Positions 20,115-64,000 of a stretch of DNA of 64,000 nucleotides are shown one piece after another. Numbering within the stretch: the first letter of the stretch is position 1; each line of letters starts with the position of its first letter. Where the stretch lies: contig NW_027270909.1 in the NCBI RefSeq assembly GCF_040938485.1, positions 3,162,001 through 3,226,000 of the forward strand. Reading direction: 5' to 3'. The notes under the pieces were generated by a model. It did no database searches. It was not told where the DNA came from and worked only from the letters and a program-made list of their open reading frames with translations. The position numbers and the translations under genes were made by a program. Source of the DNA: Diadema antillarum. Lineage: Eukaryota.

Positions 20115-20932
20115 CTAGAATCGCCTCATGCGCATACAGGCACATGACACGGGGACTTGAAGGGTCTTCTGCTCGTACCGGAAGTGGCCATCCACACACT
20201 GGGTCTTCTGCAGGACTTTCATGTTGTACATCACAGGTTGACATCGAAGGTTAGGATCCACTTCGTGTGTGTAAGGATCCAGACATGCCGAACATTGGCA
20301 CTGGGCCATAGTGATCGCCGTCGGGATACGGTCGGCATCGAAGCATTCCACGTAGGTCCACGGACACGAGCCGTCTTGGTTCGTGATCTCCGGACTTCCA
20401 GGGTTTGGTTGCGCTCCTACGGGGCAGTTCTGCGGGCTGGAGACGCCATCAAACGGACAGCTTGACTTATCGGCGAAGCCCATGTCACTGGTTGAGAGGT
20501 TGAAACTCTGTACAGCAAATGCCGGGGCCTTGGGGTAGAAGAGATTGGCGTTCATCTTCCTGCGGTGTGAATCTGCAGCGTCCAGGGGTAGACACGTCTG
20601 AGCGACAGTCTTGACTTGTGAAGAGTTGACTATTTGCAAGATCGTAGCCACCAGGGCGACTTTGATACATAGACCCTTTAAACAGAAAAAAAGACAATAA
20701 GCTCCAGTAAATTTCAAGATTTAAATTCACAATAGGGGGCCTAATGGTTCATATTTACTCCGTCACAGTACACAACAAAAGATTTGCATTGAACAAAACA
20801 CTCTCGTTAACAGTATATCAAACGACAACTTACTTAGCAACAGTTGGAAAGATTAATTTTAGAGCATGACACTTAATGAAAGTTGAAAATGGAATAATAT
20901 ATAACATATACTAATATATGTATGTATTTATG

Positions 20933-20981
<49 letters not shown>

Positions 20982-21283
20982 CCAATACATACATAGTGTA
21001 TTATATACAAATAGTATGTACATAAGATTATATAATATATATAGGCCTATATAATGTATTTACATAGTGTACGTGCTGGTAATAAAGTTTGATATGAAAA
21101 TAAAGTACACTATTTTCTCGAAGTGCGAAGCTTTTAACCTACACACCTATATATAAATCAATCAACTGATGATTAAAATCCACAAGGAATAATTGAATTG
21201 TAAAAAGACAACAAATTTGCCTCATCCTTAAGATTTTTGTTTTGTTTTAAAATTACGATTTGAATTCGTATACTTACTTTCAT
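20115..21283 (-). CDS. IL17: Interleukin-17 family cytokine, gene A; join(21283..21278, 20675..20115), 188 aa
   Basis: ATG AAA|GTAAGT donor, 602-bp intron, pyrimidine tract and AG acceptor. The product starts with a signal peptide MKGLCIKVALVATILQIVNS. IL-17 cystine-knot motifs are present: CPW, D-x-x-R-I-P, AQCQCSAC, RCQPV, KVL, YEQ, VPVSCAC. Confidence 0.93.
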
Positions 21284-21419
21284 ATTGTAGAGTGGTGACA
21301 TCCAAGTATATCGTCAAGATGTGAAAATGTATCCTGTACGCGGTTTTGCCCCTTTTCCTTAAGCTATGATTTTCAACAGATAACGATGGAACTCTACTCT
21401 GATGACGATGGTACTCGTT

Positions 21420-21668
21420 AGGTAGTATATATACCATAATTTACCGGATGTGTCACCACTGTCAAACCAAGGACAGCCTGGGAAAATCAGACATCTAAAC
21501 AATCAATCAATTGTGTTAGATCACGAGCTGAAATTTCTGTTTGTTTATCGTTTGCTTTTGGTCAATGGTATCCAGTACTCACTCAGAGAGATTCATGGAC
21601 TGCTGTGTTCCAAAGTTCGTCGGATTCCAAAGTAGCGTTTCTAAAATTATCTGATTAAGGGTTTCCCC
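21420..21668 (-). promoter_or_regulatory. IL17-A proximal promoter
   Basis: TATA-like TATATATA at 21426-21433; ETS-like ACCGGATGT next to GTGACA just upstream; kB-like GGGAAAATCA at 21480-21489 and GGGTTTCCCC at 21659-21668. Confidence 0.6.
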
Positions 21669-21910
21669 GTACGTTCGACCATTAGTGTGTTCCCATGTGT
21701 TCTCATGCTGCACTAGATGCGTAAGACGGAGTATCGGGACAAGCCCAAGTACCGAACAAACAACAAAATGTATCCTGTTATGCTAGCAGCTCAATGGATT
21801 ATAAGAGAGATACTTATGGACGAATTTAGGAAGTTGTCATCAATCACTTGAACATCTTCTTTAGTATTATTGCGGCCTTGGAAAGAAATAGTCGAATGAA
21901 AATATGAAAT

Positions 21911-23378
21911 GTGACCGTGCATCACAAAACCAACAAAAAGTCGCACGCACTTATTTTGTGTTAGGACTGAAAACAGGTGAAATGTGTCAACCTAGCTAAT
22001 CTTGAAGTTTGCATATATTATATCATGAAAGAGCAAGTCTTCTTCTACATTTTATAAAAATTCGGGATCATAAAACGAACTGGAAATTGTGCTTTTTAGC
22101 AATTTTTTCTCGAACATTTTTTTTTTGGTAGAATAGTGTGATTACGTGTTTCCCATAGAGTCCTCTTTTCATTTCGTTAAAACCCTGACCATACTCTTCG
22201 CTCTCAATTCCAATAACTTTAGCAAGAATCATGCTACTGCTTTAAAAGTCGGCAATAATCATCTACATAATGTGAAAAGGGTCACAAAAGTGACCCTGCA
22301 TACAAAACCGAGAAAAAAGTCGCCAAACATGTTTTTTTTTTAAATAATAAGAGCAGATTGTAAAAGAACAGACTTTAAGCTTTAAAATGATGTATAACTC
22401 GATTCAAATGGGCTCTTCCAACCTATCGAAATGTTGGAAAGAAAGCACACACTCTGGAAAAGTGTGAACTGATAAAAGAGGCTCTGAAGTACGGGGTCTA
22501 TTCAGGTGCTTAAAGGCATCGTATAATTTTGGTTGAGACCTAAGTTCAGGTTTCTGACACTTTTTGGTGAGATAATGAGAAACCTTTTATGAAGTATGAA
22601 AGAGCATGTAATTCCATGAGGAATTCAACGTTTATTTGATGAAAATTGGTTTTGAAATGGCTGAGATATCCAAAACAGAGTGATTCAATAAAGTGTGGAA
22701 CCCACTTTTCATTACGATCGCTTTGTTTTACTTTGTTTTTGGATGTTTCAGCCATTCCAAACCTGATTTTCATCAAACAAACTTTGAATTCCTCTTAAAA
22801 TGGTATGCTCTGTACTATTTCATAAGTGTTTTCTTGGTATCACACAAAAAGTTCAAAGCCCAATTCTCATCTCCACCAATAATGGGACAAAAGACACAAT
22901 GTAAACCACCAGAGCAACAACAATGAAGGAATTATCAGATTAAGGAGAAATTGAGCATGCTGTATTAACACATTCTGTCCATGATTAATACCAACTTTAA
23001 AAGCAGTAGCACTATCCTGTCAAAAATTACTAGAGTTGAAAGTGATTATAATATAATATAGCCCCCTTTTACATTTCTTGAAAATCCTTTGAGCACCTTT
23101 CACTTTCAAATAATGACAGAATAATCATAAAATACATACTTAATCTCACTACTTTTACAAAAAAGGTTCTAGAAAAACTGCTGAAGACACACTTTCCCAT
23201 TCATTTTATGATCCCCAAATCAAGAATGATAGAGAAGAAGGATAGCTCTTTCAGAAAATATGAAAACCCCAAGATTGACTTCGTTGACACGTTTCACGGT
23301 ATTTTTTTTTTTTTTTTTTGAGTCCTCACGTAAAATCAAGGGATGCGACTTTTTGTTGGTTTTGTGATGCACGGTCAC
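21911..23378. mobile_element. Composite of two Sola1-like MITEs (21911-22285 and inverted 22290-23378) with a nested Kolobok-like MITE (22514 to about 22878)
   Basis: Outer AAAT duplication; internal GGGTCAC-AAAA-GTGACCCTGCA junction; AGGCATCG element inserted at a TTAA site. Confidence 0.65.
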
Positions 23379-24956
23379 AAATTATATGTGAAAAACCATG
23401 AAAATCTTTAAATCAAGTTTTGGTGGCCCGAAATAAAAGCCATGAAAGCAATCCAGTTTGAATTTTGGTTGCCGATCGGGCCACCAAAATAGAAGTTTCA
23501 TGACCCGACACCAAATTTTAGTGGTACCGGGCCACCGAGCCAACCCTAAATATGAAACCCAGTGTAGATTACATAAAAATGAAAGGAACAGTACACTGCA
23601 AACGCAATCCTTTCCAAATTTCAGTTTTATGAGATCTTGATTGGCAGTGTGTTTTCCATGTTCAGGCCTCTATTTGAATTTGTCCCTCTTTTTTCTAATG
23701 CTGATTTTTATTCAATCTGAAGACATTACTAAGTTGAAATTTTCTCTGTAAAAGTGACAGTGGGACATAATTATAAAAGAGTCAGCAACCGGAAGTATAT
23801 ACATGCCACTATCATTATGATGACATACAGTAAAGAAGCAGCTCACCTGGACACTTGTGAGATCTTTCATAATACCCTATGCAGTCACAACTAGATATGC
23901 CAAATGTTTGGCGAACTGTTTCCTCCGATAAAAAAAGTAAATATGAAAAAAAAATGTATATCCATCAACGCAAACTTAACACAATCAGACAAATTTCCAG
24001 ATGACTTATGATTAATTTTGACCGTCAATATGTTCGTATTACTCGGTTGCCTTTTCCACTATTAGCTTTCGTCTTTTTCCGTTTCTTTTTTTTTTTTTCA
24101 TTTCTATTTTCAGCACCACAGCAGCTGCATGAAACACTTCTCTTCTGTAAGAGTTGAACAATTTGTGGTTTATTGATAAGTATAATTAGAAGTTCCATAA
24201 TACATGTATATAATAAAATCGAGCTTACCCTTATTTGGCATCGTTGTGCGTGATATTTTCATAATGTGTCACGAGAGTTTAGTGACTCTCGTGTATTTTT
24301 ATAGCACTTCTTCATGTGCAAGCTGCCATTAAAACAATGCTGCATTCTTATTCAAATGTCATCTTTACTTCGCAGTGGCAATCTAACTAATCAAAGATAA
24401 TACCACAGTTGAGATCTTTGCTCTCCTTTATGAACAATGAACTGACCTCTTCTTTATAAAGACATTCATGTACCACAATGATCTAGATGTGTCTTGCGGA
24501 GGGTCAGACCAGATAAAATCAGCGGAAAACGGTACGATACGAACTGTTAAATCTCTCTGTTTTCCTCCAACACAAATCTAGAGTAACACAAGGAAGATAC
24601 ATCGCCTGCCTGGGATTGATTCTTATCCAATCAATAAAATATTGTCGTTATCGTGATTAATATCACAACCCGAAAGGGAAAAACGATTACATGGATAACA
24701 TGGAATAACTGCACGTTTACAGTATAGGACGAGTAACGACGTCAATTTTGCACTGTCGTTGAGAATTCAGTCACATCCTGAAAAACAGAAATCACATTGG
24801 ACTTCTCGCAAAGGCACAATTGTCATGAGAAATAGGGGGTCCACCTAATTATTTTACAATGATTAACATAGTTATGCAAATGTGTTTATCTGCACATTTT
24901 TCTGCCCAATTGTTAAAACATTTGGTAATGATATAGGTCGAGGGTGAAGGTAAAAA

Positions 24957-25371
24957 GGGATTCCCCCAAACGGGTTCTAACAACAACAACAACAACAACA
25001 ACAATTGTGAAGAAAGGAAATGATATTTCGTGAAAAATCCAGTGAAATAAACAACAACGAAAACAAAACGGTAGAGAGATAGATACTCTTCTCTTAAATA
25101 GCCTATTATCCTCGCATTCACAAGGCTAGCTAAACAAGGGAGGCGCGCTGCTGGAAGGAAATGCCCTCTTGGACCAGAATAGTAGTTTCATATTTGAATA
25201 GGCGTGCACTCCGTGGCATAAACCCGGCGTGCGCCTGCAAACAAACTATAACGCTGAGGAAGACACGGCACGGCTCCGGGTAGCGGGGCAAGGAAGTGGA
25301 AAGCATGAAGACACGTTCCGAATTTGCAAACATGACGTAATATAGGTCCGGCAAGTCGAGGGTTTATATAG
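24957..25371 (+). promoter_or_regulatory. IL17-B proximal promoter
   Basis: Consensus kB site GGGATTCCCC at 24957-24966; GGAAATGCCC at 25157-25166; TTTCATATTTGAA; TGACGTAA at 25333-25340; TCCGGCAA; TTTATATAG at 25363-25371. Confidence 0.6.
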
Positions 25372-25554
25372 CTGCGATCAATTCGATGGGTCCTATCAAC
25401 CACCATCCCTTCACAGCCAACATCAAACCCCAAGTGCTCTTTCGTCTAGCCACCTTCGGAAACAGACACTCAGCATTTCTGATTCCCAACCGGTCTTGAA
25501 GCACAGAACACGGTGACGATCGAATACAAGCAGGACATCATACGAAACGTCAAT

Positions 25555-26374
25555 ATGAATGTAAGTAATGTGAAGCTCGTCTTTGAGAAAGTAGGTTTAC
25601 CTATTGAGAAGATTATCATGAGCGATCACATGATGAATAATACAACCAGTTTCATTCAGTGAAGCAACGAATATGTCTGTGGGCCTTTGAGATTTTAAAA
25701 CCATTTTTTTTTCATAAGAATTAGAATGATATGTCTACAAGCATGATATAGAGTCAGCCATCGGAAACTGCTATTCCAAGGTGAAATAAAAGTATTTATT
25801 TGTTCCTCTTTTGTTTTGAATACAGAGCGCATATCTTATAGCATCATTAATTGCGACAATCTTCGGAGCTGTCATGTCTTCGCCGATCCCGAGCACCTCT
25901 CAGGCATGTCTCCCCACGGACGCTGCTGACGTCCACCGTCGAGAAGTGAGTGCGGAATTATTCTATCCTAACTCTGCGGCATTCGCCGTACAGAGTTTCA
26001 ACCTGTCTGCCAGTGACATGGGCCTGCCCGATACGTCAAGCTGTCCGTTTAGTGGCGACTCCAGCCCGCAGGCCTGCCCTGTAGGAGAGAAACCAAACGC
26101 TGGAAGTCAGGAGAACCAAGACGCCTCGTGTCCATGGACCTACGTGGAATGCTTCGATGCTGACCGTATTCCAATGGCGATCACTATGGCCCAATGTCAG
26201 TGTTCGGCATGTCTGGATCCTTACACACACGAAGTGGATCCCAACCTTCGATGTCAACCTGTGATGTACAACATGAAAGTCCTTCAGAAGACTCAGTGTG
26301 TGGATGGCCACTTCCGGTACGAGCAGAGGACTCTTCAAGTCCCCGTGTCATGTGCCTGTATGAGACGAGCATAA
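25555..26374 (+). CDS. IL17: Interleukin-17 family cytokine, gene B; join(25555..25560, 25826..26374), 184 aa
   Basis: ATG AAT|GTAAGT, 265-bp intron, TACAG acceptor in phase 0; signal peptide MNSAYLIASLIATIFGAVMS; complete IL-17 domain. Confidence 0.93.
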
Positions 26375-27869
26375 GAGGCCAGCTGTTGGTGAAATATCCA
26401 TGTCTTGAGTTCTTGCTCCAATGTATTCAGTATTGACTATTCAAATATTTTTAATGTATTCTTATAAGATGTGCTAAACTTCAGTATTGCCGTACACCTT
26501 GTCCTTATGAAAGATACGATTCTCCACTTCCATAGTAGGAAGCTATACAAATGCCATTATATCTAGTTCTATTACAACTGACTTGCTTTTATTATACTTC
26601 TTATCTTAGATTTATTTCTTATCTTACATTTGATAACTGATGTAATTTAGTCTTTGTTGAAAATGGGCATATAGTCGTCCAGTATGAATGACGCTTATCG
26701 ACTTTCTTTATTTTTGACTTCGATTTGATCGCAAATCGAAGGAGAAAAGTCTAAACATATTATTGAATTCTGCGTTATAGTGGAAAGGTAGAAATGCAGA
26801 ATATCCGAAAAGAGTGACGATTACATTCGAAAACCGACAGGGTAGAATTTTACTCAACTCAAATTACAGCCGCTGTCGCAGTATAGATGAATATACTTTC
26901 ATAATTTCTTTATTATCAAGACGAGAGGGAGAGATATTCTGTACATCGTTTTGTTCAAGATAATTTGTGATCTAAAATTGCAGTGTATCTTCTGTGTTAT
27001 AGTATTCTTCTTAAATATTTTCGGAGAATACTATGAGACGTGAGAGACCCAATACTAGTACCGTATACATATCATGGGTCAATCAGATATCTCTCTTTTT
27101 GAAACGCATAATATACAAATCTATATCTAATCATCATTCCAGTTTCTGACAATTTCCAACCTGCATTTATATGTGTCATGACGACGTGATCTCTGTGTGT
27201 GTTTGTTACTTCTTGAATTCTATGCATATTGTAATTCGCAAAGCCTGAAAAAGAAATGTAGGCTGTATTACTCAATGTTTGAGTATGGAAAAAAAAATGT
27301 CAAGTTTGACGTCATGCATTACAAGTATCCACTATGTGGCATAATGTTGTTACCTTCTGGAGGAAAAGATGTATTATTATTAAAGCGTGTATTTATACAT
27401 ATGTATATACTTATTTATACATATTACAGCCCACCTATTTATTTGTTAATTTATGCACTGTATTTATTAGCTTTTGTACAATAAGCTGACTGTAATATTA
27501 TGTATTTAACTGTTAGGTATACTATAATGACTCATAAAGTACACATAGATGGGGTTTCGAAAGAGTAAATAATGTGGTTTTCTGTCGCATTTTAAGTTTG
27601 ATTCATACTTCTGTAATATCAAACCAAAGCACTTAACCAAGATAATGACTATAAGGAGTGTTTAGACATGGCTAGATATTTAATTTCCTCATGGGGTGGG
27701 AAACGGTACTTCTCAAGTATATTCCGCGTAAATGCTTTGCATGCATGTACCTATTACAAAGGGCACTTTTTATTTATTGAATACAATAAAAAGCATGAAT
27801 GATAATGTATCGTGTCTGAACACATTATTGACTTCCCAAAGAGTTTACAAATACTTAAATGACATAACG

Positions 27870-27926
<57 letters not shown>

Positions 27927-28125
27927 CATTGTATCGAATAAAGATTGACGTGTGGAATCTGTTCGCCGACTTGCTTAGCAACCCTGCTAACCACAAGTGA
28001 CCGGTATCATTTTCTGTTTCCGCATTTGTACGTGTGCGTAAGAGTTTGAGTGTGGCCTTGTAGATCTGATGTTGATGTGCTTGATCGTGTGGTTGCAAGG
28101 GTGTGCATTTAGTTGTATGTATGCA

Positions 28126-28172
<47 letters not shown>

Positions 28173-28335
28173 ATATATCATTTCAGTGAATATGTGTAAG
28201 ATTTAGGGAGTGCGCTCAGTGAGAAGAGAAGTGAGTCAACATTTTCTTATCTCTCAGACTGAGCAGATACATACATCATTCAACATAATTTTGATGTAAT
28301 CATGTAGGCTTACTTGAAATAACACACACACACGC

Positions 28336-28375
<40 letters not shown>

Positions 28376-31300: not shown

Positions 31301-32151
31301 CAATGCAACCAGCGTAGGTCAAAGGTCTGGCCCCTCAGAATTTGCGGGAAAGTCTCAACAAAATTACATCAAATATTTATTCCTTTACACGGAAACAGGG
31401 ACAATAGTGCTCTACGACTAGATAAAGTAAGAGGAATAATCATACAATTAGGCACTGTCTCCGCATAGACATGTAAAAAGTTACACAGCTGGCTATTAAA
31501 AACATCAAGAAATATTGAAAACCTTTCATTGCTCGATATTCGTGCGTGGTCCATTTATAGAATATGAATATGAACAAAATAATGTATTTATTCAATATTG
31601 ATAAGCAAATTTCATGGTATGTATTATAAAACATTTGTTATGAAGATCAACGGTAGTTTGAATGAAGTTAGGTATATGGAGTAATACTATGTATCTGAAT
31701 GATATCCCAACTAGGCTATTTGTTGTTGACAAAAGATTTCATAGGTATGACGGAGAAGAAGAAAGGTTTTTTGTTAATATTTCTAAATGAAAGATCTGCG
31801 ATATCAAGTATGTGGTTTTACCAATAACATAAAAGCATCTGATGTTTTGTTGATACCAACTATTACCGTTGGGCGAAAGCAAAAGCCCAAGGGTAATTTG
31901 TAAAGGCAACTTTTTTATTGCTTTTTTCACGAAAGAGAAATATGAAAGTTTATTGTATTGTGAAAAGATCACAAATTTGAATGTAATTTGGGAGGAAGTA
32001 TTAAAAAATTAACATACATAGGAAAACGGAATAAAGCATTTTTTTTTTCAAAGATATGCTGTAGTTTAAACAAAAACAGTTTGTTCGGCAATGTAATGAC
32101 CCACATTTATATAATGTTTGTGATTGTAGGAAAGGCATCCAGCATCCATAT

Positions 32152-32842
32152 GTGACCGTGCACCTCAAAACGAACATAAAGTCGCACACACTGATTTTGC
32201 GTGAGGACTGAAAATAAGTGAAATGGGTCAACCTACCCGAACTTGACTTTTTCACATTTTCTGAAAGAGCGGGTCTTCTTTTACATTATGCTAACATTTG
32301 GTATCACAAAACGGGCAGGAAAGTGTGTTTTTTTTAGCAGTTTATCTCGAACATTTTTGGTAGAATAGTGTGATTAGGTGTGTCTTTAGAATCCCTTTTT
32401 CATTTCTGAAAAACCTTGTCCACACTCTTCACTTTCAACTCTAATAACTTTTAAAAGGATAGTGCTACTGCTTTGAAAGTTGGCGTTAATTATGGACAGA
32501 ATGTGTTAATGAGGCATGCTTAATTTCAGTTTAATCTGATAATCCCTTCATTGTTGTTACTCTGGTGGTTTACTTCCTGTTTTTTTATAACTTCCATCGC
32601 ACAGCCAGCACGGTTTGGTAAAGATTAAGCGCTTGAATAGACACTGTACTTCAAAGCCTCTTTTCTCAATTCACACTTTTCCTGAGTTTGTGCTTTCTTT
32701 CCAATATCTAGATAGGTTAGGAGAATCCATTTGATGTGAGTTATACATCATTTTAAAGCTTAAAGTCTGCTCTTTCAGAATATGGTCTTAACTAAAAATT
32801 CAAGTCTGGCGACTTTTTGTTTGTTTTGAGGTGCAGGGTCAC
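32152..32842 (+). mobile_element. Sola1-like MITE, 691 bp, unit 1 only
   Basis: Same TIRs as 18279-18967; TSD ATAT. Confidence 0.8.
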
Positions 32843-33109
32843 ATATTATGTACTGTAAGATGAATCGTTCTTTTTTTTCAATTTAAGAAATAGGTAAAAT
32901 GTGTTTTCTAGAGTCGATGCTTTTTTTATTATCATTGGAGCTAAGAAAATGAAAATGGGTGATATGGTAAATTTGGCATTTTGGAGTATTTATGAAGTGT
33001 TGATTATGAGAAAATTAAACAGGGAAGGACAAAAGGAACAGCTATTAATGATTTTGTGTTTGCTTGGTGTTTTTTTTTTCCGGAGAATTAGTGTTTTCAT
33101 AGATGCTGG

Positions 33110-34774: not shown

Positions 34775-34962
34775 GGGAATTCCCTTGCCCTGGGAATAGT
34801 TTCATATTTGAACAGGGTGTACAGACGATGTGTCTTAGTTTAAACAGCGCAAAATTAGAGCTCGGGATGTCTATGATAGCGTGCGGGAAGGAACTAGGAA
34901 GTATGAAGACACGTTCCGTGTCAGGTGACATAATCTCCATCCGGTAAGCTGATGATATAAAA
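34775..34962 (+). promoter_or_regulatory. IL17-C proximal promoter
   Basis: Palindromic kB site GGGAATTCCC at 34775-34784; TTTCATATTTGAA; GGTGACATAA; CATCCGGTAA (ETS-like); TATAAAA at 34956-34962. Confidence 0.7.
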
Positions 34963-35153: not shown

Positions 35154-36221
35154 ATGAATGTGAGTCCTACCATCACTTTAGTTTGACATTCAAGAAGAGT
35201 CGTGCCATTATGATTATCTTACCAGCACACCTGACATTGACAGTTGCGATCGTTGCAATTACAATTCCGCATGGTATTTCAGTTGACTGCCTGCGCTCGT
35301 CTTTCATCTAGCAAACACTCGAAAATTTTGTCGCGGTGTACCCTATGTACTAGATTCAATTTATTTTGCATTTGTCAACTAATGCAGGTTAATGTATTTC
35401 TGCAAAAGTCGTGTGTAATTTGTCTATATCAAGAAACAAAAGGAAAATATTTATCGTAATTAAATATTCCATTTAAATGATTTCCCATTTGCATTGAAAC
35501 TCCGTTACTAGTTGAAATGCGAATAGTATTCAAGCTGTTTTCCACTTATCATGTTTTCTGCATTGAAATTAGCAATTAGTTTGATATGATTTTATCCATA
35601 TGGACGTATGGACGTATCATTTACCAATCTCTTATCATTTTGCCTCATCAGACCCTACTTCTACTTACGTCGATGGCAGCAGCAGCAGCAGCTATCATCC
35701 AGACCGTTACGTCGTCACCAGTCCCAAGCACCTCTCAGGCATGTCTGCCAATAGACGCAGCTGATTCCTATCGACGAGAAATGAACTCTAATCTGTTCTA
35801 TCCCAAAGCGGCAGCATTCGCCGTACAAAGTTTCAACCTGTCGACCAGTGATATGGGCTTGGCCCACACGTCGAGCTGTCCATTTGATGGCGTCTCCAGC
35901 CCGCAGAACTGCCCCGTAGGAGCGAAACCAAACGCTGGAAGTCCGGAGATCGTGAACCAGGACGGCTCGTGTCCATGGACCTACGTGGAATGCTTCGATG
36001 CCGACCGTATCCCGATGGTGATCACTATGGCTCAGTGTCAGTGTTCTGCATGTCTGGATCCTTACACACACCAAGTGGATCCAAACCTTCGATGTCAACC
36101 TGTGATGTACAACATGAAAGTCCTTCAGAAGACCCAGTGTGTGGATGGCCACTTCCGGTACGAGCAGAGGACCCTTCAAGTCCCTGTGTCATGTGCCTGT
36201 ATGCGCATGAGGCGAGCATAA
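35154..36221 (+). CDS. IL17: Interleukin-17 family cytokine, gene C; join(35154..35159, 35652..36221), 191 aa
   Basis: ATG AAT|GTGAGT, 492-bp intron, CATCAG acceptor; signal peptide MNTLLLLTSMAAAAAAIIQTVTS; complete IL-17 domain. Confidence 0.93.
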
Positions 36222-36812
36222 GAGGCCAGCTGTTGGTGAAATATCCATGTCTTGAGTTCTTGCTCCAATGTATTCAGTATTGACTGTTCAAATATTTTTA
36301 CTGTATTCTTGTAAGATGTGCTAAACTCCAGTCTTGCCTTACACCTTGTGCTCTACAAGAGCCATCTAGCTCTAACTAAAACTGAATTGTTGTTAAGACA
36401 TTTCTTTCTAAAAATTATTTATTATTAGCTGATGTAATTAGGCTTTTATGTAAATGAGCAAGAAGTTTGTTTGTATAAATGACGCTGATCGACTTTCTCC
36501 GTTCATTTTTGACGATGATTACATAGCAAATCGATGAATATTTTTGATTTATACGTTATAACGGAAAGTGGAAATTCAGAAAATCTGAAATTAGTGACGA
36601 TTACATTCGAAAAGGAAAAGGTAGAATTTAATTTGACTTAAAAACAATTACAGCTGCAGCGGTAGTTAGATAGATGATTCGAAGTTCATGATTTATTGTC
36701 TTTTTCATTAAAACGAGAGGTAGAAATTATATTGTAGATTGTTGTTGTTTTTTCAAGATGATTTGTTATGTAAAATTGCAATGTATCTCTTGTGTTATAG
36801 TATTTTTCTTAA

Positions 36813-37374
36813 ACAACAAGTTCATCTTTATATACATGTGGATTAAGTAAATGCAGCAATATCATTAGAACACATTAGTGAAAGTTTGGGGAAAATCGTA
36901 CGATCCGTTCAAAAGTTATGCATTTTTAAATCATCTGTGCAGTCACTGCTGGATAAGAAAGAAGTCTACTACTGTGTATGATGTCACAAGCATACATCGA
37001 TATAAGGAAGATGTAAATAGAATTTCACAAAAACTTTTAGTTTTTTTGAATAAAGTGCACATTTCCTCAATCTGTCACTGATGTATATTAAGGGTAATAT
37101 TATTCCCCCTGCCTTCTGACAGAGGCAAGTCAAGCGTTCTTATATCATTCGAGAAAGTGAAAATATGTTGAATTGTCTTTATATTTTATTTACATCGTTA
37201 TAATTATACATGTGACATCACAAGCAGTAATCTTATCAAGCAGTGACTTAGCAAAAACTTCAAAAATTCAAAACTTTTGAACGGGTTGTCCAAATTGTCC
37301 TCAACCTCTCGCTGATGTGTTCTAATATTGCTGCATTCACTTTATCCACATGTCTAGGAAAGTGATCTTGTCCT
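36813..37374. mobile_element. Kolobok-like MITE shared by units 2 and 3
   Basis: Follows TTAA at 36809-36812; TIRs containing AATGCAGCAATATCATTAGAACA and its reverse complement; empty TTAA site in unit 1 at 27011-27014. Confidence 0.75.
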
Positions 37375-38043
37375 TTCATCTTGTTAGGAGGATACTGTTA
37401 GACGCTTAAGACCCAATTCTACTACTGTGTATACATAATGGATCAATCAGTTCTCTTTCTCTTTAAACACATAATGTTCAAATTTCAATCTAATCATCAT
37501 TCTAGTTTTTGACAGTTTCCAACCTGCATTTGTATGTGTCATTAGGACGTGATCTCTGTGTGTGTGTGTTACTTTTTGAGTTCTCTGTATATTGTAATTT
37601 GCGAAGCCTGTAACAGAAATGTAGGCTCTATTACTCAATGTTTGAGTACGGGAAAAAAAGTCAAGTGTGACGTCATGCATTACATGTATCCACTATGTGG
37701 CATAATGTTGTTACCTTCTGGAAGAAAAGCTGTATTCCTATTAAAGTGTGCAGTTATATATATTCATATATTTATTTATACGTATCACAACCCACCTATT
37801 TATGTGTTAATGTATGTATTAGCCTCTGTACAATAAACTGACTGTAATATTATGTATTTTACTGTTTTGTATATTGTAATGACTCAAAAAGTAGATGGAG
37901 TTTCGAAAAAGTAATATGTGTGTGTGTGTGTGTGTGTGTGTGTTTTGTGTCACATTTTAAGTCAGATGTAAACTTCTGGAATATGAAACCGTGGAAAAAA
38001 AAAAACATTTAACCTATATAATGACTGTCAAGGGTGTTTAGAT

Positions 38044-53543: not shown

Positions 53544-53581
<38 letters not shown>

Positions 53582-54761
53582 GATATATCATTTCAGTGAA
53601 TATGTGTAAGATTTAGGGTGTGTGCTCAGTGAGAAGAGAAGTGAGTCAACATCGGTCAACTCGGTCTTATCTCTCAGACCGAGTAGATACATACATCATT
53701 CAACATAATTTTGATGTAATCATGTAGGCCTACTTGAAATAACACAAACACAAACACACACACACCCAAACAACATACACATGTAACGCAAGTAACACAC
53801 ACACACACACACACAAACGTAACGTGCGTATACACAGCCAGAGCCAGAAACAAGCACGCATCACAAAAAAGGAAGAAAATTTCTACTCGTTAAGAAGAAA
53901 TCGTGAAAGAAACAATATAATGACGTAATAGAATACCGTGTTTTCATTTAAAAAATGAGCGGTTTGAGGTAAATGATTATTTGAAAACAATTTCTAGATA
54001 TCACTTGACAAAAGTTTAAAAAAGTTGGTCCTACGTAGGGACGGAGTTTTTAATTTGGGTTGTGAATTCATTTCAAGATTTACAGGTATTATAATCATTG
54101 TTTATCTATACCATTTACCCGAATATGAGAATTAAAGTGAAGAATGCATTCGATCCAAGATTTGAAATATTCGCGATTTGTAACTCGGAGTTCTAAACAC
54201 ACAAGTATGAAATAATGTTGACTTGAATCTTCTCCCTTGGGGGATTTATCAAAAATGATCGTAACAGCTTGACGTCCAGTGTGTACTGTAATTTCTTCTG
54301 TCAAGGTGTTTTCGTTCTAATGCAGGGGCATAATAATAAGAAACTGCTACGTCTTACAAGTGAACTGTGTACCTTGCCCTTATATTCAAATATTAATTTA
54401 ATAGACTACTAACAGGAGGCGCCACAGGAAGATTTTAGCTCTACTGATTTTTTTTTCAAGATTTCTTCACAACTGCTCAACTTTGTACCTTACAACGTAC
54501 GTTTCTTAGTTTTCATTGATGTCCTTATACTCTTCTTTCGGGAGGGGGCGGTATTATATCTAAGACTCCTAACCGGAGGCGCCAGAAGTAGATTTCTGCT
54601 GAGCTGAAACAATAATATTTGAGAGAAGACGTTTCATAACTTTTGTTCCTCGCTAATCAAATAGGCCTGTGCAAATTATGGACACCTGGCAGTGATGGGT
54701 AACTAGATTTAGAGGACCTTGTCGACGAGCAGTTGAAATATCGAAGAGAACATGAGCCATG

Positions 54762-55767
54762 CCCTTATGGAACAAACACAGTGTTACCACTGTCAATGTA
54801 TTCACATATTTAACTATGTGTAAAATGTGTGAATATAGTGTGTTCACAGTTTTGACACAGTGTGAAATTACCAACTATGTGGTTCACCACATACAACTCA
54901 CGTAGTCATACAGTTACCACAGCTTACCACGTAATGGTCACAGTGTGTACTATGGTATAGTATGTGGGCATGGTGTGTTCAAAGAGTTGTCATAGTTTGA
55001 ATTTTCCGACTATGTGGTAAACCACATACTTATCATATGGTGACATGCAGTTAACTCATAATAGTCACAGTGTGTCACATATTGCAGTCTATGGGAATAG
55101 TGCCTCCACAGAGATGTCACAGTGTGAAACGATAAACTATGTGGTTTATCTCCTACTAGCCACATAGAAGTATACAGTTACCACAGCTATCACACAATAG
55201 CCACAGTGTGTTACATAGTCTGTGGGAAAGATGTGTTCACTTATACACAAATATTGTGTATTTAAAACTATGTGACTTACCACATGCTAAATCTGAAAGA
55301 AATCACAGTTACCACAGCTTACCATTGGCCAACGTGTGTCACATACTGTAATTTGTGAAATTTTGTGTGCCCACAGAGTTGCCACAGTGTGGAATTCTAG
55401 TCTATGTGGTTCTTCCCCAAAAGTCACAAACTAATCACAGTATCGCAGGACTATCACAAGACAATACAATATGCCACACAGCAGTACCTCACATGAGTAA
55501 CACACAGCAGTAGGTCCTACTGGAATAAACTAACAAACTAACATACCACACACATATTCCAAAATGTAATTGATAAATAAGTAATGCTGTGAATCATAAC
55601 AATTGATTTAAACAGTATTTAACCTGACATATGCTCCTGCAGTATTACCCATTTAGTTGGAGTGCTGAGGTACAGTATGTGATACTTCATGTGGTATTTC
55701 TGTGGTATTCCTATGGTATTCCTGTGGTACTCTTGTGGTAACACTGTATCACAAATCTTTACACAGG
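54762..55767. mobile_element. CMC/EnSpm-like CACAGT-array element, paralogous to 43056-44130
   Basis: Starts CCCTTATGGAACAAACACAGTGTTACCAC; inverted GTGGTAACACTGT near 55735-55750. Confidence 0.5.
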
Positions 55768-56016
55768 TTATGAATACTCATTAAAAGCAATCAAAATTTA
55801 AGAAAATACATAAAAGACTTTTAATTTCAGAGTATTTATGATGCGATTTACTTTGAACTTTATCATACATTGTCTAATAATATCATAATATTCCCAATGT
55901 CATAGATTTTGTTATGAAAATGTAATTTCATATGTTGATGGTAAAGTATTGTCAAGTTAGTAACCATACCTTAATGCATTACGAATAGATGGTCTGTACA
56001 TGTATATTATCATATT

Positions 56017-56224
56017 GAAGAGTTTGTTCGCAAAAACCGATAAGTCCATATTTGCCAAGTGGAGATATTTGTGATTAAAGATCAAGAAAAACAAAGAGAA
56101 TAATAAGAAAAATTTTGCTTCTTTTGACCATAACTTCAAAAATATATCTTTATATGTATGAACAATATATCATTTAAAAAGGTATTATTTTGTACTTTAT
56201 GACAGAGACCGTACTTCAAAATCT
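56017..56224 (+). mobile_element. 244-bp MITE family copy running into the gap
   Basis: Left TIR and interior match 41329-41572. Confidence 0.8.
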
Positions 56225-56401
56225 NNNNNNNNNNNNNNNNNNNNNNNNNNNNNNNNNNNNNNNNNNNNNNNNNNNNNNNNNNNNNNNNNNNNNNNNNNNN
56301 NNNNNNNNNNNNNNNNNNNNNNNNNNNNNNNNNNNNNNNNNNNNNNNNNNNNNNNNNNNNNNNNNNNNNNNNNNNNNNNNNNNNNNNNNNNNNNNNNNNN
56401 N
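56225..56401. other. Assembly gap (N run)
   Basis: Run of N. Confidence 1.
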
Positions 56402-56502
56402 AATCATGCGCTTTCCTCGCCAGGATAAAGCGTTTTTAGATCTATTGCCATTTTAGGTTTTTTATCACATTCACTTCTGTTCGTTTTTGATCAGTGACTA
56501 CC

Positions 56503-56600
56503 AGGAAAGGCTGGTTGACTATCAGGTAAAGTCTGATTGACTATCAGGAAAAGTCTGATTGACTACGGGAAAGACCGTTGACTATCAGGAAAGTCTGATA
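56503..56600. repeat. About 20-bp tandem repeat TGACTATCAGGAAAAGTCTGAT, about 5 copies
   Basis: Direct inspection. Confidence 0.8.
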
Positions 56601-56923
56601 CAGTATTCCATCACTGACAAGGCACAACTACTGGCTGGGATGTCTCTTTGGGGCCGGAGGTGTGAGGTTGCGTCAGTGAAAGACGAGATGAGGTGGGTCT
56701 CTGAACCGTTTATCTTCGTGATAGTAAATCGGAGCAATGACATTGGCAATGTAAGTCCATTGAAAAGCTATCAGGGATTCATTTTGTCATGTTTTTTTTT
56801 TTAACACTGAATTCATCCTTTCATCTTTGGCTCTTCATGGAGGGAACCAGTCCATGGATGCGTCGTTGCTACGCCTAACGCGCACAGACACACTGCGCGG
56901 TTACCATGCACTGTGGCACCAAC

Positions 56924-58775
56924 CTCTTCTTCTTCTTCTCGAGTCACTACGCAGAAAGGAACGTTAGATTCGTCCAGTCCAATGTTGGATGCACTGCCTG
57001 GCACAGGGCGTTAGAGCTGCCAGATCCTCCTGTGTGCAAGGCTCTGGTAGAAGTGGACAGACCAGGAGATGTTGCATAGTCTGCTCCTCTCCACACAGGC
57101 AGGTGGTGTCATCATTCTCACTATACCCCCACTTTGCTAGGTTAGATTTGCAGCGGCCGACAGCACTTCTTAGGCGATTGCAGCAGGACCAGAAAGGCCA
57201 TGCCTCACTGGCACCTGATGGTGTAGTTTCCTTAGGGCCGGTAGTAGACACTGTATGCGGTGTATGGGTAAGACGTTCAATCCACATGGATACACGCTGC
57301 TTGTCAGGGCTTTTGTTCAGGGCCTTTACAGAATGCATGAAGCTGCGCCTGGATTTTAGCCTCTTTCTTGAATGATCATGATTGAAGAGAGGGTGGCGAG
57401 GGTCATTTTCTTGCTTCAGCTTTTCCTTCTGGGATGCAACGGTCCTACGGATGCTTGGAGGAGCAATCCCACTCAGTAGGTAGAGGTCTTCAACCTTTGT
57501 GGGCTTTAGGCAACCAGTAATAGCACGACATGAAGAGTTTAGAACAGTGTCAATCTTAGTGGCATGAGCTGATCTACTCCAGACAGGTGACGCATACTCA
57601 GCTGTAGGGTAGCATAAAGCCAGTGCTGTTGTACGTACCGTCTTCGCATCAGCACCCCACTTCGTATAAGTGAGCTTTCGGAGGATACTTTTCCTTGATG
57701 CCACCTTTGCCTTGTTCTTAATGATGTGATCCTTGAAAGTGAGGGACCTGTCAAGTGTCACCCCCAGGTAGACTGGCTTGGATACATGTTGCAGGCGTTT
57801 CCCATACCAACTAATCCGTAGTTGACGGCTGGCTTCCCTATTCTTAAGATGAAACACACTGATTTGTGTTTTGTCTGGGTTAGCTCTTAGATGGTTGTTG
57901 GCATAGTAGGGAATGAGTAAGTCCAGTGCACTGGAGAGGGAGTCCTCTACTTCTTCGAAGGTGTCCTTTTGAGATGCAATGCAAAGGTCATCAGCATAGA
58001 GGAAGCGTCTAGTGTCTGGTTGAGTAGGTTGATCGTTTGTGTAGATGTTAAACAACAAAGGGGCAAGCACACTCCCTTAAGGAAGTCCGTTCTTCTGTGT
58101 CCTCCATCTACTCTTTCTACCACCGAGGTCTACGAAGAATCTGCGGTTTGATAGCATGTTGCAGATCAACTTTGTGAGTCTAACATCTGAGGTCATCTCA
58201 TACAGTTTCTTGGCAAGGATACGGTGATTGACTGTGTCGTATGCTGCAGAAAGATCGACAAAGGCAGCACCAGTGATTTTTCTGTTCTCAAAACCATCCT
58301 CGATGTACTGCGTGAGGTTCAGTAGTTGTCCTGTACATGATTTTCCCGGTCTGAAACCCGCCTGCTCCGGAATAAGGTGATCATCAACGAACAATGCTAT
58401 GCGGTTCAGGAGTTAATGGAGGCGTTCAAACAGCTTGTACATGTGGCAGAGTAGGGATATCGGCCTATAGCTCTTAGGGATGGCAGGGTCTTTACCAGGT
58501 TTCAGTAGAGCAATGACTTTTGCTTTCCTCCACATCTTTGGGATCTTGTTGGACTTAACACATTCGTTGACCATATCAAGAAGCCATCTGCGTGCACCTG
58601 GCCCGAAGTGTTTGATCTGTTCCACTAGGACATCATCAAGACCTGCAGCCTTGTTGTTTTTCATAGACTTCATTGCAGATTCCAGTTCACTCATTGTGAA
58701 TGGCCTTGTGAAACTTGTGGCGTCTTGTGAGGATGCATTAGCAGCTCTGGGAAGTTTAGCCCTCTGAGGACGGCA
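56924..58775 (-). mobile_element. 5'-truncated Vingi/Ingi-like non-LTR retrotransposon (RT pseudogene)
   Basis: ORFs 58413-58694, 58077-58394 and 56964-58070 are one frame split by two in-frame stops (ERLH*LLNR; GLP*GSVL). RT motifs: YRPISLL, QAGFRPG, FVDLSAAYDTV, YADD, YLGVTLD. C-terminal CxCx7Hx3C and a (GAA)n tail are present; there is no endonuclease or RNase H. Confidence 0.9.
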
Positions 58776-60934
58776 ACTACCAGACTAGACGCATTCCATC
58801 ACCGGCAGGTTAGTTTTGAAATCCGTCCGACCAGGAGCAGACATATATCCTTGTGTGTATGTCTGCTTCAGAAACGGATTTTAATCTTACATCACATCGA
58901 ATCCTGGTCGCTGATGAAGAATGTGATTACTAACCTGTTTGGTGTCTTGTTTCTAAATCATGCGCTTTCCTCGCCAGGAGAAAGCGTTTTTAGATCTATT
59001 GCCATTTTAGGTTTTTTTATCACATATACTGATACTCCCGATGACTAAGAATAGGAAGACTATTCTAGATCTATTTAGGACTACAATGGTAGAAGGCCGT
59101 ATGAGTTGTTTGATGTTATACATTAGGAGAAGGACAGATTATAAAGGTAGGGAAATGTTTGTACCGAAATTCATACTCGCCTATTAGGTAAATTATGATA
59201 CATTTCATTATGGCTATTGATTGTCCCAGATTTTTTTCCCGACTATGTTCGATAACACCGAGTGAAAGACTGTGGTAGATACCACAGTATGAGAGACTGT
59301 GGAAGATAACACCGTATGGGATGCCTCACTTTGACATACTGTGTTACCTACCACAGTATTCACCCTGTGATTTTCCACAGTGTGACAATAACACAGTATT
59401 ACCCTACGCCCCATTTCACAGGAAACCATAGTGTGAGATAAAACACTGTGTTTCACACTGTGAATCACAATGTGTGTTTAATATGTTGCAACGCTATGAC
59501 TATTCCAAAAGAGATAGATACAGTATGGATGATTAGACAGCAAACAGCTGACAAAAGGTTTTGAATACGATTTTTCACATGAAAAGCTTCATAAGGAGTG
59601 ACTTAAGGAAAAGCGATATGTTGGATGAATCATTGGAGAATGACAACACCTGAATTGCTGAGGTTGAACGGAGACGCTGTATGTGTATTGTTTGATTAAT
59701 AAATTTTATGTATAGTGCATTGTACATTTACAATCTAAATGTCTTCTGGGTGTGAGACCTTGACATTTTGTTGCAAACGGTGTACAAAATGCATAGGCGA
59801 GAGAGATCTCGAATCTGAACCTTCCCTCGCCCTGGTATTGCAGAATGCCATCATTCACACGGAGGTGCGATAGAACAAGGTCCGCCGGATTTTCGTATTT
59901 CCGCCAAGTTCACTGGACTGTCATTTTCTCCTCCTGTGGCAAGATCAAAATATTGTAAACTGATCCAAAAATGTAATCAATAGTTATTTTTGGAGTTAAT
60001 GATCCAAATGAGCTATTGTCCCATCTATGTTCAGAAGTGATATCCTTCTTTACAAACAACTATTTCCCCGTCGTGATCATCCACCTGTCGAATATAATAT
60101 TTGTAAAAAACTTCGACTCTTCACTTCAGTCAGGTCAATTCGCTTTGCTGATCAGCAGTGATCCTGGCCATTAATCATCTAAACAGAGTCTACATGCTGT
60201 TGTGTTGTGATAGTGATATAACTTTTAAAGATGTGAATACAAGGGAAGCCCCAAATACAGCACCGCAAAAATTGGGAAACCTGCTCATCGTTATGATCTA
60301 ATATCGTCTCATCGAATAAATTAAAGCTAAGTGAATGGTGAAAAAAACGCCAACGAATTCAAATGACGGAGTGACTTTCATACGGCTTTGTATGCCTTCT
60401 AGACTACGTTACCGATAAATTTTAAACAGATACGGAGTAGTAACTGCATCAAAAAAAAAAAAAAAAACAGAGGGCAAGCACATGGGTTACTAACAAAATA
60501 GAAATGGATATACTTACAACTTCAGACTTCGGACAACTATAATATACGTCAGCAGTGTAACAATGACATCAGACACTTCGGAGAATCCCGCAGAATTTTG
60601 ATTTCGCAGAAGGGAAGTTCCATTTCCGTCTACTCAAAGAATACTTAACAATACAACAAACGAAGAGGAAATCTACCACAACATCCGTAATTTATAATAG
60701 TGCGGAATGCATGTGAAAGTACAGGTCATCAACGCACACGTATTCATGCAATCCAACTTGGTGTCAGGTAAAAAAATAACTGGTAAAATATCAAGCGCGA
60801 AAGTGACAGGGGTAGAGAGAAGAAATACTAATGTTATTAAAAGAAATGCCATTTTCGTTGGTAAAGCTTTACGTCTATTGCAAGTGTTGTTTCATTGTAT
60901 CAAACAGTTTTGAATCAGGTTTTGTTTAAGAGGA

Positions 60935-61330
60935 AGTGAATACCATTAAATTGATGTTACACATAACTTTCAAACTTCTGTATTTATGTTTAAGTAGACG
61001 CACAATTTGTCACTACAGTCCTTTCAAAACTTTTTTTTGATTACAATGCTTACATTCATTCGTACAATACAAGACGCTCAACAGATTTTCGTCTACATAA
61101 TCCAAAATCTCTTATAGCTCACAGGTCAGTGAGGCGTCACGGACCTGATACATGGAATGCTTTACCCGACTCCCTAAAGTCACGAACATCTCTGTTTTCT
61201 TTTAAAGCTACTTTAAAGAAATATATTTCAACTCAATATATTTCGTGAAAATAAAGTATAATGATTGATATGATTTTGTTCGTGTTTGTGTTTTGGTTTG
61301 AAATTGTTATTATCATTATATTGATATAAT
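60935..61330 (+). mobile_element. CR1/Crack-type LINE 3' fragment, unit 3 only
   Basis: NAYIHSYNTRRSTDFRL...GPDTWNALPDSLKSRTSLFSFKATLKKYI, then a stop and AATAAA. Confidence 0.75.
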
Positions 61331-62869
61331 GAAGAACAATTTTTATGATTAGAAATGGCCAATCTCATAAACGAGACAACGGAATTGTTAATGTTCATTC
61401 TTTTTCACCTAAATACAGAATAATATTGGCGTGAGATGTATACCAAAATAAACAACTTTGTTATAATTCAAAATGCCGAAGATTTCAAGCAATAGAGATA
61501 AAAGATATTTGCACAATTATACACTTTTGCAGTGACGTTATACTGAAGCATATCAATAGATTATTTTCTTTAAGAAGATATTAAACAAAATATTATTTCT
61601 TTTTGAAAAGTGGAAAAGGTTAAGATCAATGAAGGAGGCTTTTTCTCCTTTTTCTTTACATTGGAAAATGACTTGCACGTAATGGCTTTACATTACAGAA
61701 GTAATTGTTCTATCGCAGCGACTTTCCCTTGATCATAGTATCAGAAAACTTGTGTCAGAAATTGAAGGAAGATATGCCGATGTATTTACCTCATTTGATG
61801 TTAAGGTTTATATGCATGTTCTCGGTAGAGAATAGAAACAGAGTGAAGTAGATATGTCGCTATTGAATATGACTCGATATTATCCTTTCGATGTCTTGGT
61901 TAAAGATGGCAGATAACACGTTGTCCTTCCCTACTGAAAAGAACGCAGTGTCCCACAGTGCGTTCACACTGTCCACAAAGTCTATTTTAATGTAACAGTC
62001 TGGAGATTATTTCACACTGTGGTGTGGTTTTTCAAAGGGTACTCACTATTAATGTTTTGTTCCACACCGTCAATTAATGATTCGCACCTATGAATTGATG
62101 ATTCACAATGTGTTCAAACTGTTGATATGCTTGAATTTATCAGTGCGAACACCTTTCAGGTGTCAAATATGTGTGTCAAGCGTAGCAATTCTCAAAAAGG
62201 GTGGCGAAACCGGAAAGAGGGGGAGGGCCAGACTCTACCTTACATGTCCTTTTCTAGGGGGAGAGGGCTATGTCGACTTCTTCACATCTTAGTTGCTATT
62301 CATCATTCACTATGCTTTTCTCCACAAAAAGTCAGATTCTCATATTTCCTTGTTTTCTTGATATATTAATAAGTTATCAATAAGATATCCGTCTTTGTAT
62401 AAACCAAATTGGCCTTGCTTCCGTTTGTACGGCTTTGGTTTTCCTACTGCAAAACAGAAAATATTCCCGCTGATAAATTTTCCTGGACTCTTAATTTCCC
62501 TTTTGCATCAGTATCTTTAACCGTGAGTTTGGGTTTCTCTCATAAATGTTGTTTCAGAAACATAACCCTGTCGAGTGACAGGTCATTTAGAGTTACAAAC
62601 TGTTTAAATTATGTCAGGGATTCTCTCTATCTAAAAAATTTCACCAGAGATCTGCGTCATCAAATAATGACTTCAGAATTTGTATTCAGCATTCTTGCAA
62701 TGAATATTTTTGTTTGATAGTACTTTGGTCAGTTCCAAGGCAAGGAGTAGATCATTAGAAAAATATCCAATTTGTTATTTTTTTTTAAGTGGAACAGTAA
62801 GTGTATTTAAGAAGGCTATTTCTGGCTCTATAATTTCATGTACAAAATGTAATTATAGCGCCATCTCCA

Positions 62870-63051
62870 GGGAATTCCCTTGTCCATGGAGAGGTCTCAT
62901 ATTTGAACAGGTTGTACAGACGATAGGCCTTTGTTTAAACAGCACAAATGATTGTCTAAGATAGCAGGAAAAAAGTGGGAAGTACTGTAAAGATACCTTC
63001 CGTGTTCATAAAGGTGACACAATCTCTATCCGGTAAGCTGATGGTATAAAA
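62870..63051 (+). promoter_or_regulatory. IL17-E proximal promoter
   Basis: GGGAATTCCC at 62870-62879; CTCATATTTGAA; GGTGACACAA; TATCCGGTAA; TATAAAA at 63045-63051. Confidence 0.7.
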
Positions 63052-63244
63052 CTGGTCAGTGTGGTGTTTTCTCCATCATCTTAATCCTGTATGCTAGAGC
63101 ATCCAGTGAACATCACCGAGCATTTCTTGCCTGGAAGATACCTCAACGTCAACTTGCTGCGTGGAGAGGACTCGTGTAAAACGGCTCAATTGGAAAAGCA
63201 CGTTACACTGCAAGAAACAAGAGGACTTCAACACCACGCTCAGA

Positions 63245-64000
63245 ATGAATGTGAGTCCTACCACCACTTTAGTTTGACATTCAAGAAGAGTCGTGCCATT
63301 ATGACTATCTTACCATCACACCTGACATTGACAGTTGGTATCGTTGCAATTACAATTCCGCATGGTATTTCAGTTGACTGCCTGCGCTCGTCTTTCATCT
63401 AGCAAACACTCGAAAATTTTGTCGCGGTGTACCCTATGTACTAGATTCAATTTATTTTGCATTTGTCAACTAATGCAGGTTAATGTATTTCTGCAAAAGT
63501 CGTGTGTAATTTGTCTATATCAAGAAACAAAAGGACAAGATTTATCGTAATTAAGTATTCCATTTAAATGATTACCTATTTGCATTGAAACTCCGTTACT
63601 AGTTGAAATGCGAATAGTATTGAAGCTGTTTTCCACTTATCATGTTTTCTGCATTGAAATTAGCAATTATTTTGACAAAATTTTATCCATATGGCCGTAT
63701 GGACGTAGCATTTACCTATTTCTTATCATTTTGCCTCATCAGACCCTACTTCTTTTTACGTCGATGGCAGCAGCAGCAGCTATCATCCAGACCGTCACAT
63801 CGTCACCAGTCCCAAGCACCTCTCAGGCATGTCTGCCAATAGACGCAGCTGATTCCCATCGACGAGAACTGAACTCTAATCTTTTCTATCCCAAAGCGGC
63901 AGCATTCGCCGTACAAAGTTTCAACCTGTCGACCAGTGATATGGGCTTGGCCCACACGTCGAGCTGTCCATTTGATGGCGTCTCCAGCCCGCAGAACTGC
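63245..64000 (+). CDS. IL17: Interleukin-17 family cytokine, gene E, 5' part; join(63245..63250, 63743..>64000)
   Basis: ATG AAT|GTGAGT, 492-bp intron; exon 2 is open for 86 codons to the window end (TLLLFTSMAAAAAIIQTVTSSPVP...SSPQNC) and nearly identical to gene C. Not in the ORF track. Confidence 0.9.

Follow-up and report, generated by a model that had tools for sequence, protein, structure and literature searches.

A tandem array of IL17-1-like cytokine genes in the sea urchin Diadema antillarum

In this work we have analysed a stretch of 64,000 nucleotides from the sea urchin Diadema antillarum (hereafter the window), which lies in contig JBFRCO010000021.1 of assembly GCA_040938485.1 with its position 1 at record position 3162001, and in which a tandem array of interleukin-17 (IL-17) genes has its left end. 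We consider it very likely that the array is made of intact cytokine genes of the IL17-1-like type, each with two exons and its own TATA promoter, that it has grown by duplication of whole units, and that the cystine-knot half of the proteins has been kept by selection together with gene conversion. D. antillarum is a keystone grazer of the Caribbean and has been struck by mass die-offs.

Gene content of the array

A six-frame listing of open reading frames (ORFs) revealed five IL-17 loci in the window, here named A to E; the first four are complete, and the window ends within E. Long ORFs with nearly identical C-terminal sequence are found at 20115-20717 on the minus strand and at 25874-26374, 35586-36221 and 50699-51271, and a fifth runs from ~63686 off the end of the window; no stop or frameshift interrupts any of the IL-17 ORFs A-E. 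The products of A-D match the Pfam family IL17 (PF06083) with E-values of 6.5e-18 to 3.6e-17 and scores of 63-65 bits, for a family cut-off of 24 bits, and the matches cover model positions 3-81 of 81. Among solved structures the best sequence matches were human IL-17F, IL-25 and IL-17A, and the knot cysteines line up with theirs. The phmmer alignment to IL-17F (3jvf, 1jpy) matches both the AQC..C and the C-x-C motifs, and the knot cysteines are invariant in the family alignment. When the annotated proteins were used in a tblastn search over the 64-kb window, no convincing IL-17 locus was found beyond A-E.

Gene A is inverted relative to B-E and stands head-to-head with B, and the ATG-to-ATG spacings obtained by self-comparison are 9.60 kb (B-C), 15.06 kb (C-D) and 13.03 kb (D-E). 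Genes beyond the window were placed with annotated proteins and are given in window-equivalent coordinates: E, complete in the record, ends at 64309, F lies at 77.7 kb, G at 96.0 kb and I at 123.7 kb, and H ends at ~114.2 kb. The array thus holds at least nine IL-17 genes (A-I) over ~104 kb, the multi-copy tandem arrangement typical of the IL17-1 subfamily. A preliminary description of this DNA had already reported at least five IL-17 genes (four complete and one partial) without stops or frameshifts, in units of 9.6-15 kb with A inverted, and had predicted that the array continues past the window; the Pfam matches, the ORFs, the spacings and the location of F, G, H and I bear it out on all these points, which fit the known pattern of IL-17 expansion in echinoids (Buckley et al. 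2017; PMC5457136).

Exon structure and signal peptides

The five genes of the window follow one predicted two-exon plan, with a coding exon 1 of 6 nt, a donor GT[A/G]AGT, an intron of 265-602 nt that ends in an in-phase polypyrimidine-AG acceptor, and an exon 2 of 549-570 nt carrying the IL17 domain. In gene A, on the minus strand, the coding part of exon 1 is ATGAAA (Met-Lys; 21278-21283) followed by the donor GTAAGT, with an in-frame upstream ATG at 21301, and this exon 1 region is base-for-base the same in Diadema setosum. Exon 2 of A (20115-20675) consists of 186 codons plus the stop (Pfam E-value 3.6e-17), begins after the acceptor ...tttaaag/GGT and agrees with the RefSeq models P0003 and P0023. 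The other four genes are on the plus strand and have ATGAAT (Met-Asn) as the coding part of exon 1. This is located at 25555-25560 in B, with the donor GTAAGT, and at 35154-35159 in C, 50211-50216 in D and 63245-63250 in E, with the donor GTGAGT in these three genes. The corresponding second exons, supported by both ORF and Pfam match in B, C and D, are at 25826-26374 (B), 35652-36221 (C), 50711-51271 (D) and 63743-64000 (E, up to the window end).

The predicted leaders are MK-GLCIKVALVATILQIVNS in A, MN-SAYLIASLIATIFGAVMS in B and MN-T(L/I)LLLTSMAAA..QTVTS in C/D/E. Once exon 1 is added, each predicted protein starts with a hydrophobic leader of 18-23 residues and a conserved cleavage-like x-S/S-P or S-Q site at its end. 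The RefSeq models of G and I begin exactly at the homologous exon 1 (MN/TL...), which is conserved in D. setosum as well, whereas the GenBank models of C, D, E and F begin at an internal Met (MAAA...; at 35673 in C, whose exon 1 is missing from the model) and leave a hydrophobic stretch of only 7-8 residues. Furthermore, orthologs or paralogs in D. setosum preserve exon 1, donor, acceptor and promoter. Gene B is modelled in GenBank with a 12-codon exon 1 and a later in-frame donor, at ~25590; in the D. setosum B gene this later donor is deleted and the extension runs into a stop, while ATGAAT/GTAAGT is intact, which favours the two-codon exon 1 for this gene too. A two-codon exon 1 is accordingly the predicted structure of all five genes. 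The tiny first exon would encode Met plus one residue, and everything else would come from exon 2: the remainder of the signal peptide, then an N-terminal half that varies, and finally the cystine-knot half.

Core promoters and upstream regions

At the BLAST level, A, B and C/D/E have no common sequence upstream of exon 2, and their leaders, introns and most of the upstream DNA cannot be aligned between these three groups. However, A-E have in common a core module formed by CCGGNAA and a TATA box within 3-12 nt, ~190-200 bp upstream of the ATG. It is found at 21426-21447 on the minus strand in A (CCGGTAAA ... TATATATA) and, on the plus strand, at 25348-25370 in B, 34941-34961 in C, 50005-50025 in D and 63030-63050 in E. 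The B module lies inside a block of ~110 nt (25300-25410) without a single difference from D. setosum, the background identity being 86%. Considering both strands, the module occurs five times in the 64 kb, only at IL-17 genes, and first-order Markov simulations gave 0.14 occurrences on average and 2 at most, although the count is descriptive, as the pattern was defined post hoc, after the sequences had been seen. In B-G and I the alignment also extends over ~80 nt further upstream.

The preliminary description had distinguished three promoter and leader types and had seen different signal peptides, introns and upstream regions in A, B and C/D/E. The differences are real in that these regions are not alignable at the BLAST level, but the division into three types has to be abandoned: the 6-nt coding exon 1 and a homologous core promoter are present in all five genes, and their leaders are diverged versions of a single type. 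The common module indicates one ancestral promoter type with diverged surroundings. Each gene would then carry its own TATA-containing core promoter derived from that ancestor. The bZIP-like motif TGACRTWAT, which recurs in several of the promoters, was not significantly enriched in the window (9 found versus 4.6 expected), so no transcription factor is assigned to these promoters, and a search for a composite with fixed spacing found nothing.

Two further observations concern these upstream regions. In the genes of the C/D/E type, a further ATG is conserved upstream of the main one and downstream of the TATA module (35003, 50066 and 63091), and it is also present in G (~9850 in locus L009). 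It opens an upstream ORF (uORF) of 8 codons in C and one of ~50 codons in D and E that overlaps the main start and would end just past the exon 1/2 junction. These uORFs may provide translational control, depending on where the unmapped transcription start lies. The inverted SpIL17-1h-type gene of Strongylocentrotus purpuratus (L012) and both IL17-1 genes of Lytechinus pictus (L013), in all of which exon 1 codes for Met-Lys, have a promoter with TTCCGGCAA followed by a TGACAT(A/T)AT-like motif and then a TATA box. These elements resemble those of Diadema in a slightly different order, and may represent a deeply conserved regulatory module.

Subfamily assignment

In the protein tree, all the array genes of D. 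antillarum and D. setosum form one clade (support 96/96), within which each of the genes A, B and I has a D. setosum partner (100/98, 94/97 and 98/91, respectively), so that these three lineages are older than the split of the two species. The head-to-head A/B pair and its flank, down to 13.4 kb of the window, are colinear in D. setosum. A and B are old lineages of the array, and their head-to-head arrangement is common to both species. The tree with the sea-urchin subfamilies that the preliminary description had proposed thus defined a Diadema clade, its deep nodes staying open.

Outside Diadema the closest proteins are Lytechinus IL-17s, with 67-68% identity. The 90% cluster of one of these (P0005), which represents an IL17-1 cluster, also holds S. 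purpuratus proteins with an ME leader whose sequences include SSCPYD and IPMSISMA, the peptides of the published SpIL17-1 primers. Identity to IL17-10-like proteins is 51-54%. Furthermore, the predicted exon sizes of 6 nt plus 549-570 nt are those expected of IL17-1 genes (6 nt plus 561 nt in SpIL17-1k). Since the deep nodes of the tree are unsupported, the assignment to IL17-1 rests on identity, exon structure and the organization of the array.

Several points weigh against the overall reading of the array. Long branches interfere with the deep part of the tree, which by itself does not group the Diadema genes with SpIL17-1 to the exclusion of IL17-10-like proteins, and the approximately unbiased (AU) test for a single IL17-1 clade only fails to reject it (p 0.27). 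The flank of the array (window 1-20000) gave no tblastx hits to the IL17-1 loci of S. purpuratus and L. pictus, and the inverted gene is head-to-head in Diadema, in contrast to the tail-to-tail position that it has in S. purpuratus and Lytechinus. To these we add the post hoc definition of the promoter pattern mentioned above, and the fact that exon 1 splicing, expression and inducibility are all predictions.

It could be argued from the open deep nodes and the undetected flank synteny that the array belongs to another echinoid subfamily, such as IL17-10, or to one specific to Diadema, more so because the first coding exon of SpIL17-10b is very short as well and IL17-10 flanks the IL17-1 array in S. 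purpuratus. We consider this unlikely, as identity to the Lytechinus representative of the IL17-1 cluster clearly exceeds that to IL17-10-like proteins, the exon sizes are like those of SpIL17-1k, tandem multi-copy organization is typical of IL17-1, and the single clade was not rejected by the AU test.

The resemblance to the SpIL17-1 array of S. purpuratus, whose genes have a first exon for Met and one Glu and coding exons 6 nt and ~561 nt long (Buckley et al. 2017, eLife 6:e23481; PMC5457136), extends to several other traits. Both arrays consist of nearly identical tandem genes in units of 4-15 kb with one inverted end member; the genes of both have two exons, exon 1 with Met plus one residue and exon 2 with ~560 coding nt that include the IL17 domain; both have extra cysteines at CPWTY and RCQP that restore the third disulfide of the knot, and the putative signal-peptide cleavage motif (V/A)-x-S/SP is present in both. 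They differ in that exon 1 encodes Met-Asn or Met-Lys in Diadema instead of Met-Glu, and in that the Diadema array, unlike that of S. purpuratus, contains a polyketide-synthase gene (see below). As the Diadema genes are a clade of their own, the expansions are lineage-specific with respect to SpIL17-1. Inducibility by Vibrio in the larval gut has been shown for S. purpuratus only.

Selection, gene conversion and growth of the array

Nonsynonymous (dN) and synonymous (dS) divergence was estimated by the Nei-Gojobori method separately for the leader, the N-terminal half and the C-terminal half of exon 2. The C-terminal half, which contains the knot, had dN/dS values of 0.06-0.18, in agreement with the preliminary description that the knot halves are nearly identical and indicating strong constraint. 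In the comparisons of A or B with C or D, dS decreased along the exon, from more than 1.3 in the leader to 0.42-0.86 in the N-terminal half and 0.14-0.30 in the C-terminal half; between C and D it was flat (0.14-0.22).

Gene A behaves as a mosaic. When it was compared with its D. setosum ortholog, dS was 0.083 in the N-terminal half and 0.428 in the C-terminal half, whereas against its paralog D the values were 0.73 and 0.14. Accordingly, 66 of the 68 informative sites located 5' of 20466 group A with the D. setosum ortholog, and 18 of the 25 located 3' of 20461 group it with paralog D. This switch is highly significant (Fisher p 1e-11; reached by 0 of 10000 shuffles) and places the breakpoint at 20461-20466. 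Exon 2 of A therefore contains a gene-conversion tract of ~340 bp (20121-20461, minus strand) that came from a donor of the C/D type, extends as far as the stop codon and is younger than the split of D. antillarum and D. setosum. The near-identity of the knot halves is thus due to purifying selection plus gene conversion. In B, C and D the near-identity runs for ~120-130 nt into the 3' untranslated region (UTR), with 113-119 of 120 positions identical, and this block is also 92-94% conserved in D. setosum, so that conversion and constraint cannot be separated there.

Concerning the growth of the array, C pairs with E (100/98) and D with F (93/91) in the tree, dS is 0.02 for C-E and 0.06 for D-F, and units C and E share 93-95% identity across more than 10 kb. 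All these data indicate a recent duplication of a two-gene block of ~28 kb, from C-D to E-F. In the model that we propose, the array would have grown by unit duplications of which this is a recent one, and purifying selection and conversion between paralogs would hold the knot half nearly identical while leaders, introns and distal upstream DNA drift. The earlier idea of a birth-and-death cluster that holds its domain constant, and might diversify regulation and dosage, stands as regards the strong constraint, but part of the constancy is concerted evolution, as the conversion tract in A reveals, and no clear dead copy was found in the window.

More tentatively, these features could be parts of a mosaic mode of evolution, in which conversion tracts, reaching the stop codon in A and going ~130 nt beyond it, into the 3' UTR, in B-D, would keep the receptor-binding half interchangeable among all the paralogs, and the ancient A, B and I lineages would keep private leaders and distal regulatory DNA around the common core promoter. 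We regard this as a possibility with the odds against it. If induction of the paralogs did differ by tissue or stimulus, "one ligand" would be uncoupled from "many switches", and the array would be a compact model of how cytokine regulation diversifies without co-evolution of the receptor.

By analogy with SpIL17-1, the products would probably be secreted dimeric cytokines, silent at rest and acutely induced in the gut epithelium by microbial disturbance, and they may signal through IL17 receptors such as IL17R1 and IL17R2, which are known in S. purpuratus (PMC5457136). As most SpIL17 transcripts are all but missing in the unchallenged state, and 5 of the 35 S. purpuratus genes are pseudogenes (Buckley et al.; PMC5457136), an array that looks intact could also be silent or decaying, with one or two functional members only. 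This seems quite improbable to us, since all pairwise comparisons, those of the recent pairs among them, give a dN/dS far below 1, conservation of the TATA module, start codon, donor and acceptor extends to all copies and to two species, and no copy has a stop or a frameshift.

Assembly and haplotypes

The D. antillarum assembly retains haplotigs, with 84% duplicated BUSCOs and ~66% redundant contigs according to the published genome papers. It is however highly improbable that some or all of the copies (for example E-F with respect to C-D) are an artefact of haplotypes stacked in tandem, in spite of this redundancy and of the closeness of C/E and D/F (dS 0.02-0.06), because the units differ by 5-23% with many indels (identity between units in the self-comparison of the window is 77-92%), at least eight genes of the array clade are on one chromosome in D. 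setosum, and both haplotypes probably carry C-D-E-F. In this last respect, a separate contig of 216 kb (JBFRCO010001822.1) is 99.8-99.96% identical to the window and carries D, E and F with their order and spacing unchanged, and the protein of gene C (P0010) is recorded on two contigs, so the tandem copies appear to be present on both haplotypes. In addition, near-identical copies of G and I (proteins P0015 and P0021) are found on a third D. antillarum contig of 6,781,023 bp, which probably represents the right part of the array in the other haplotype.

The spacer between D and E contains a run of N (56225-56401), which is 5 kb from the nearest IL-17 coding sequence and hence in no IL-17 reading frame. 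Its flanks are 177 positions apart both in L003 (the same record, 100% identity) and in L002 (the second contig, 99.8-99.96%), and they are colinear with the paralogous unit C (55593-55990 with 43958-44357, and 59024-59787 with 44402-45166). The run of N and the broken non-LTR retrotransposon beside it (56964-58694, minus strand) are therefore inside an insertion of ~3 kb specific to unit D. The reverse transcriptase of this element is split across three ORFs, with its pieces at 56964-58394 on the minus strand, and an RVT_1 gene is called on the second contig too. The retrotransposon is present on both assembled haplotype contigs and missing from the paralogous point of units C and E, which means that it was inserted after unit D split from unit C.

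Comparison with other immune gene families

The vertebrate genes IL-17A and IL-17F are also adjacent paralogs, and their proteins (1jpy, 4qhu) have, like those of the urchin, the PF06083 cystine-knot signature, with the C-x-x-x-x-C and C-x-C motifs aligned; they are secreted and have an N-terminal signal peptide, as is predicted for the urchin proteins. By sequence the two groups are distantly related (E ~6e-5), cysteines of the urchin proteins stand in the place of vertebrate serines, and the copy number in the urchin is far higher. The SpTransformer/185-333 arrays are another case of tandem immune genes with duplication and exchange of sequence between copies; they encode effectors instead of cytokines, and the exchange produces mosaic diversity in them, whereas in the Diadema IL-17 genes it homogenises the functional domain.

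The Diadema array is already automatically annotated, and RefSeq names its genes interleukin 17-like, 17C-like or 17D-like; IL-17 is not mentioned in either published Diadema genome paper. To this our analysis adds the corrected first exons, the common core promoter, the C-D to E-F block duplication and a dated gene-conversion tract, and in doing so it extends, and does not change, what is known from the purple sea urchin. The array is a clean example of gene conversion acting together with purifying selection in cytokine genes. Moreover, a correctly annotated array, in which C, D, E and F regain their overlooked first exons and with them full signal peptides, could supply immune markers for studies of disease.

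Other features of the locus

The polyketide-synthase gene lies between G and H on the minus strand, from window-equivalent 103.4 kb (17378-21066 in L009), and encodes more than 908 residues with ketoacyl-synthase and acyltransferase Pfam domains. To the left of A, a tblastn match at 17468-17626 was considered as an extra IL-17 relic and discarded as unconvincing, given its weak score (E ~0.08-0.1) and the stop inside it. Its similarity, 30-32% over 50 residues, is to the N-terminal half of IL-17 proteins, as a decayed exon relic or a chance match would give. None of the ORFs left of A, including one of 144 amino acids at 16421, had a Pfam match, and a second run of N (3616-3866) is located in this gene-poor left flank, outside the IL-17 array.

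With regard to repeats, the region downstream of C (36222-38100) contained no inverted repeats of at least 12 nt within 120 nt of each other (seed 9). Two diverged internal repeats at 38043-38521 and 40713-41069 are ~73% identical, with one copy inverted, and lie in a strongly C-rich stretch (GC skew -0.19) of the long C unit. They make up part of the extra length of this 15-kb unit. Finally, a repeat of ~700 bp has copies at 18277-18975 and 32150-32850 that are 95% identical to each other and partial copies at 21907-22513. It is present as well at 6481-7172 of L004 and twice in the D. setosum locus L010 (~94.6% identity), is scattered in the spacers of the array and is probably a mobile element.

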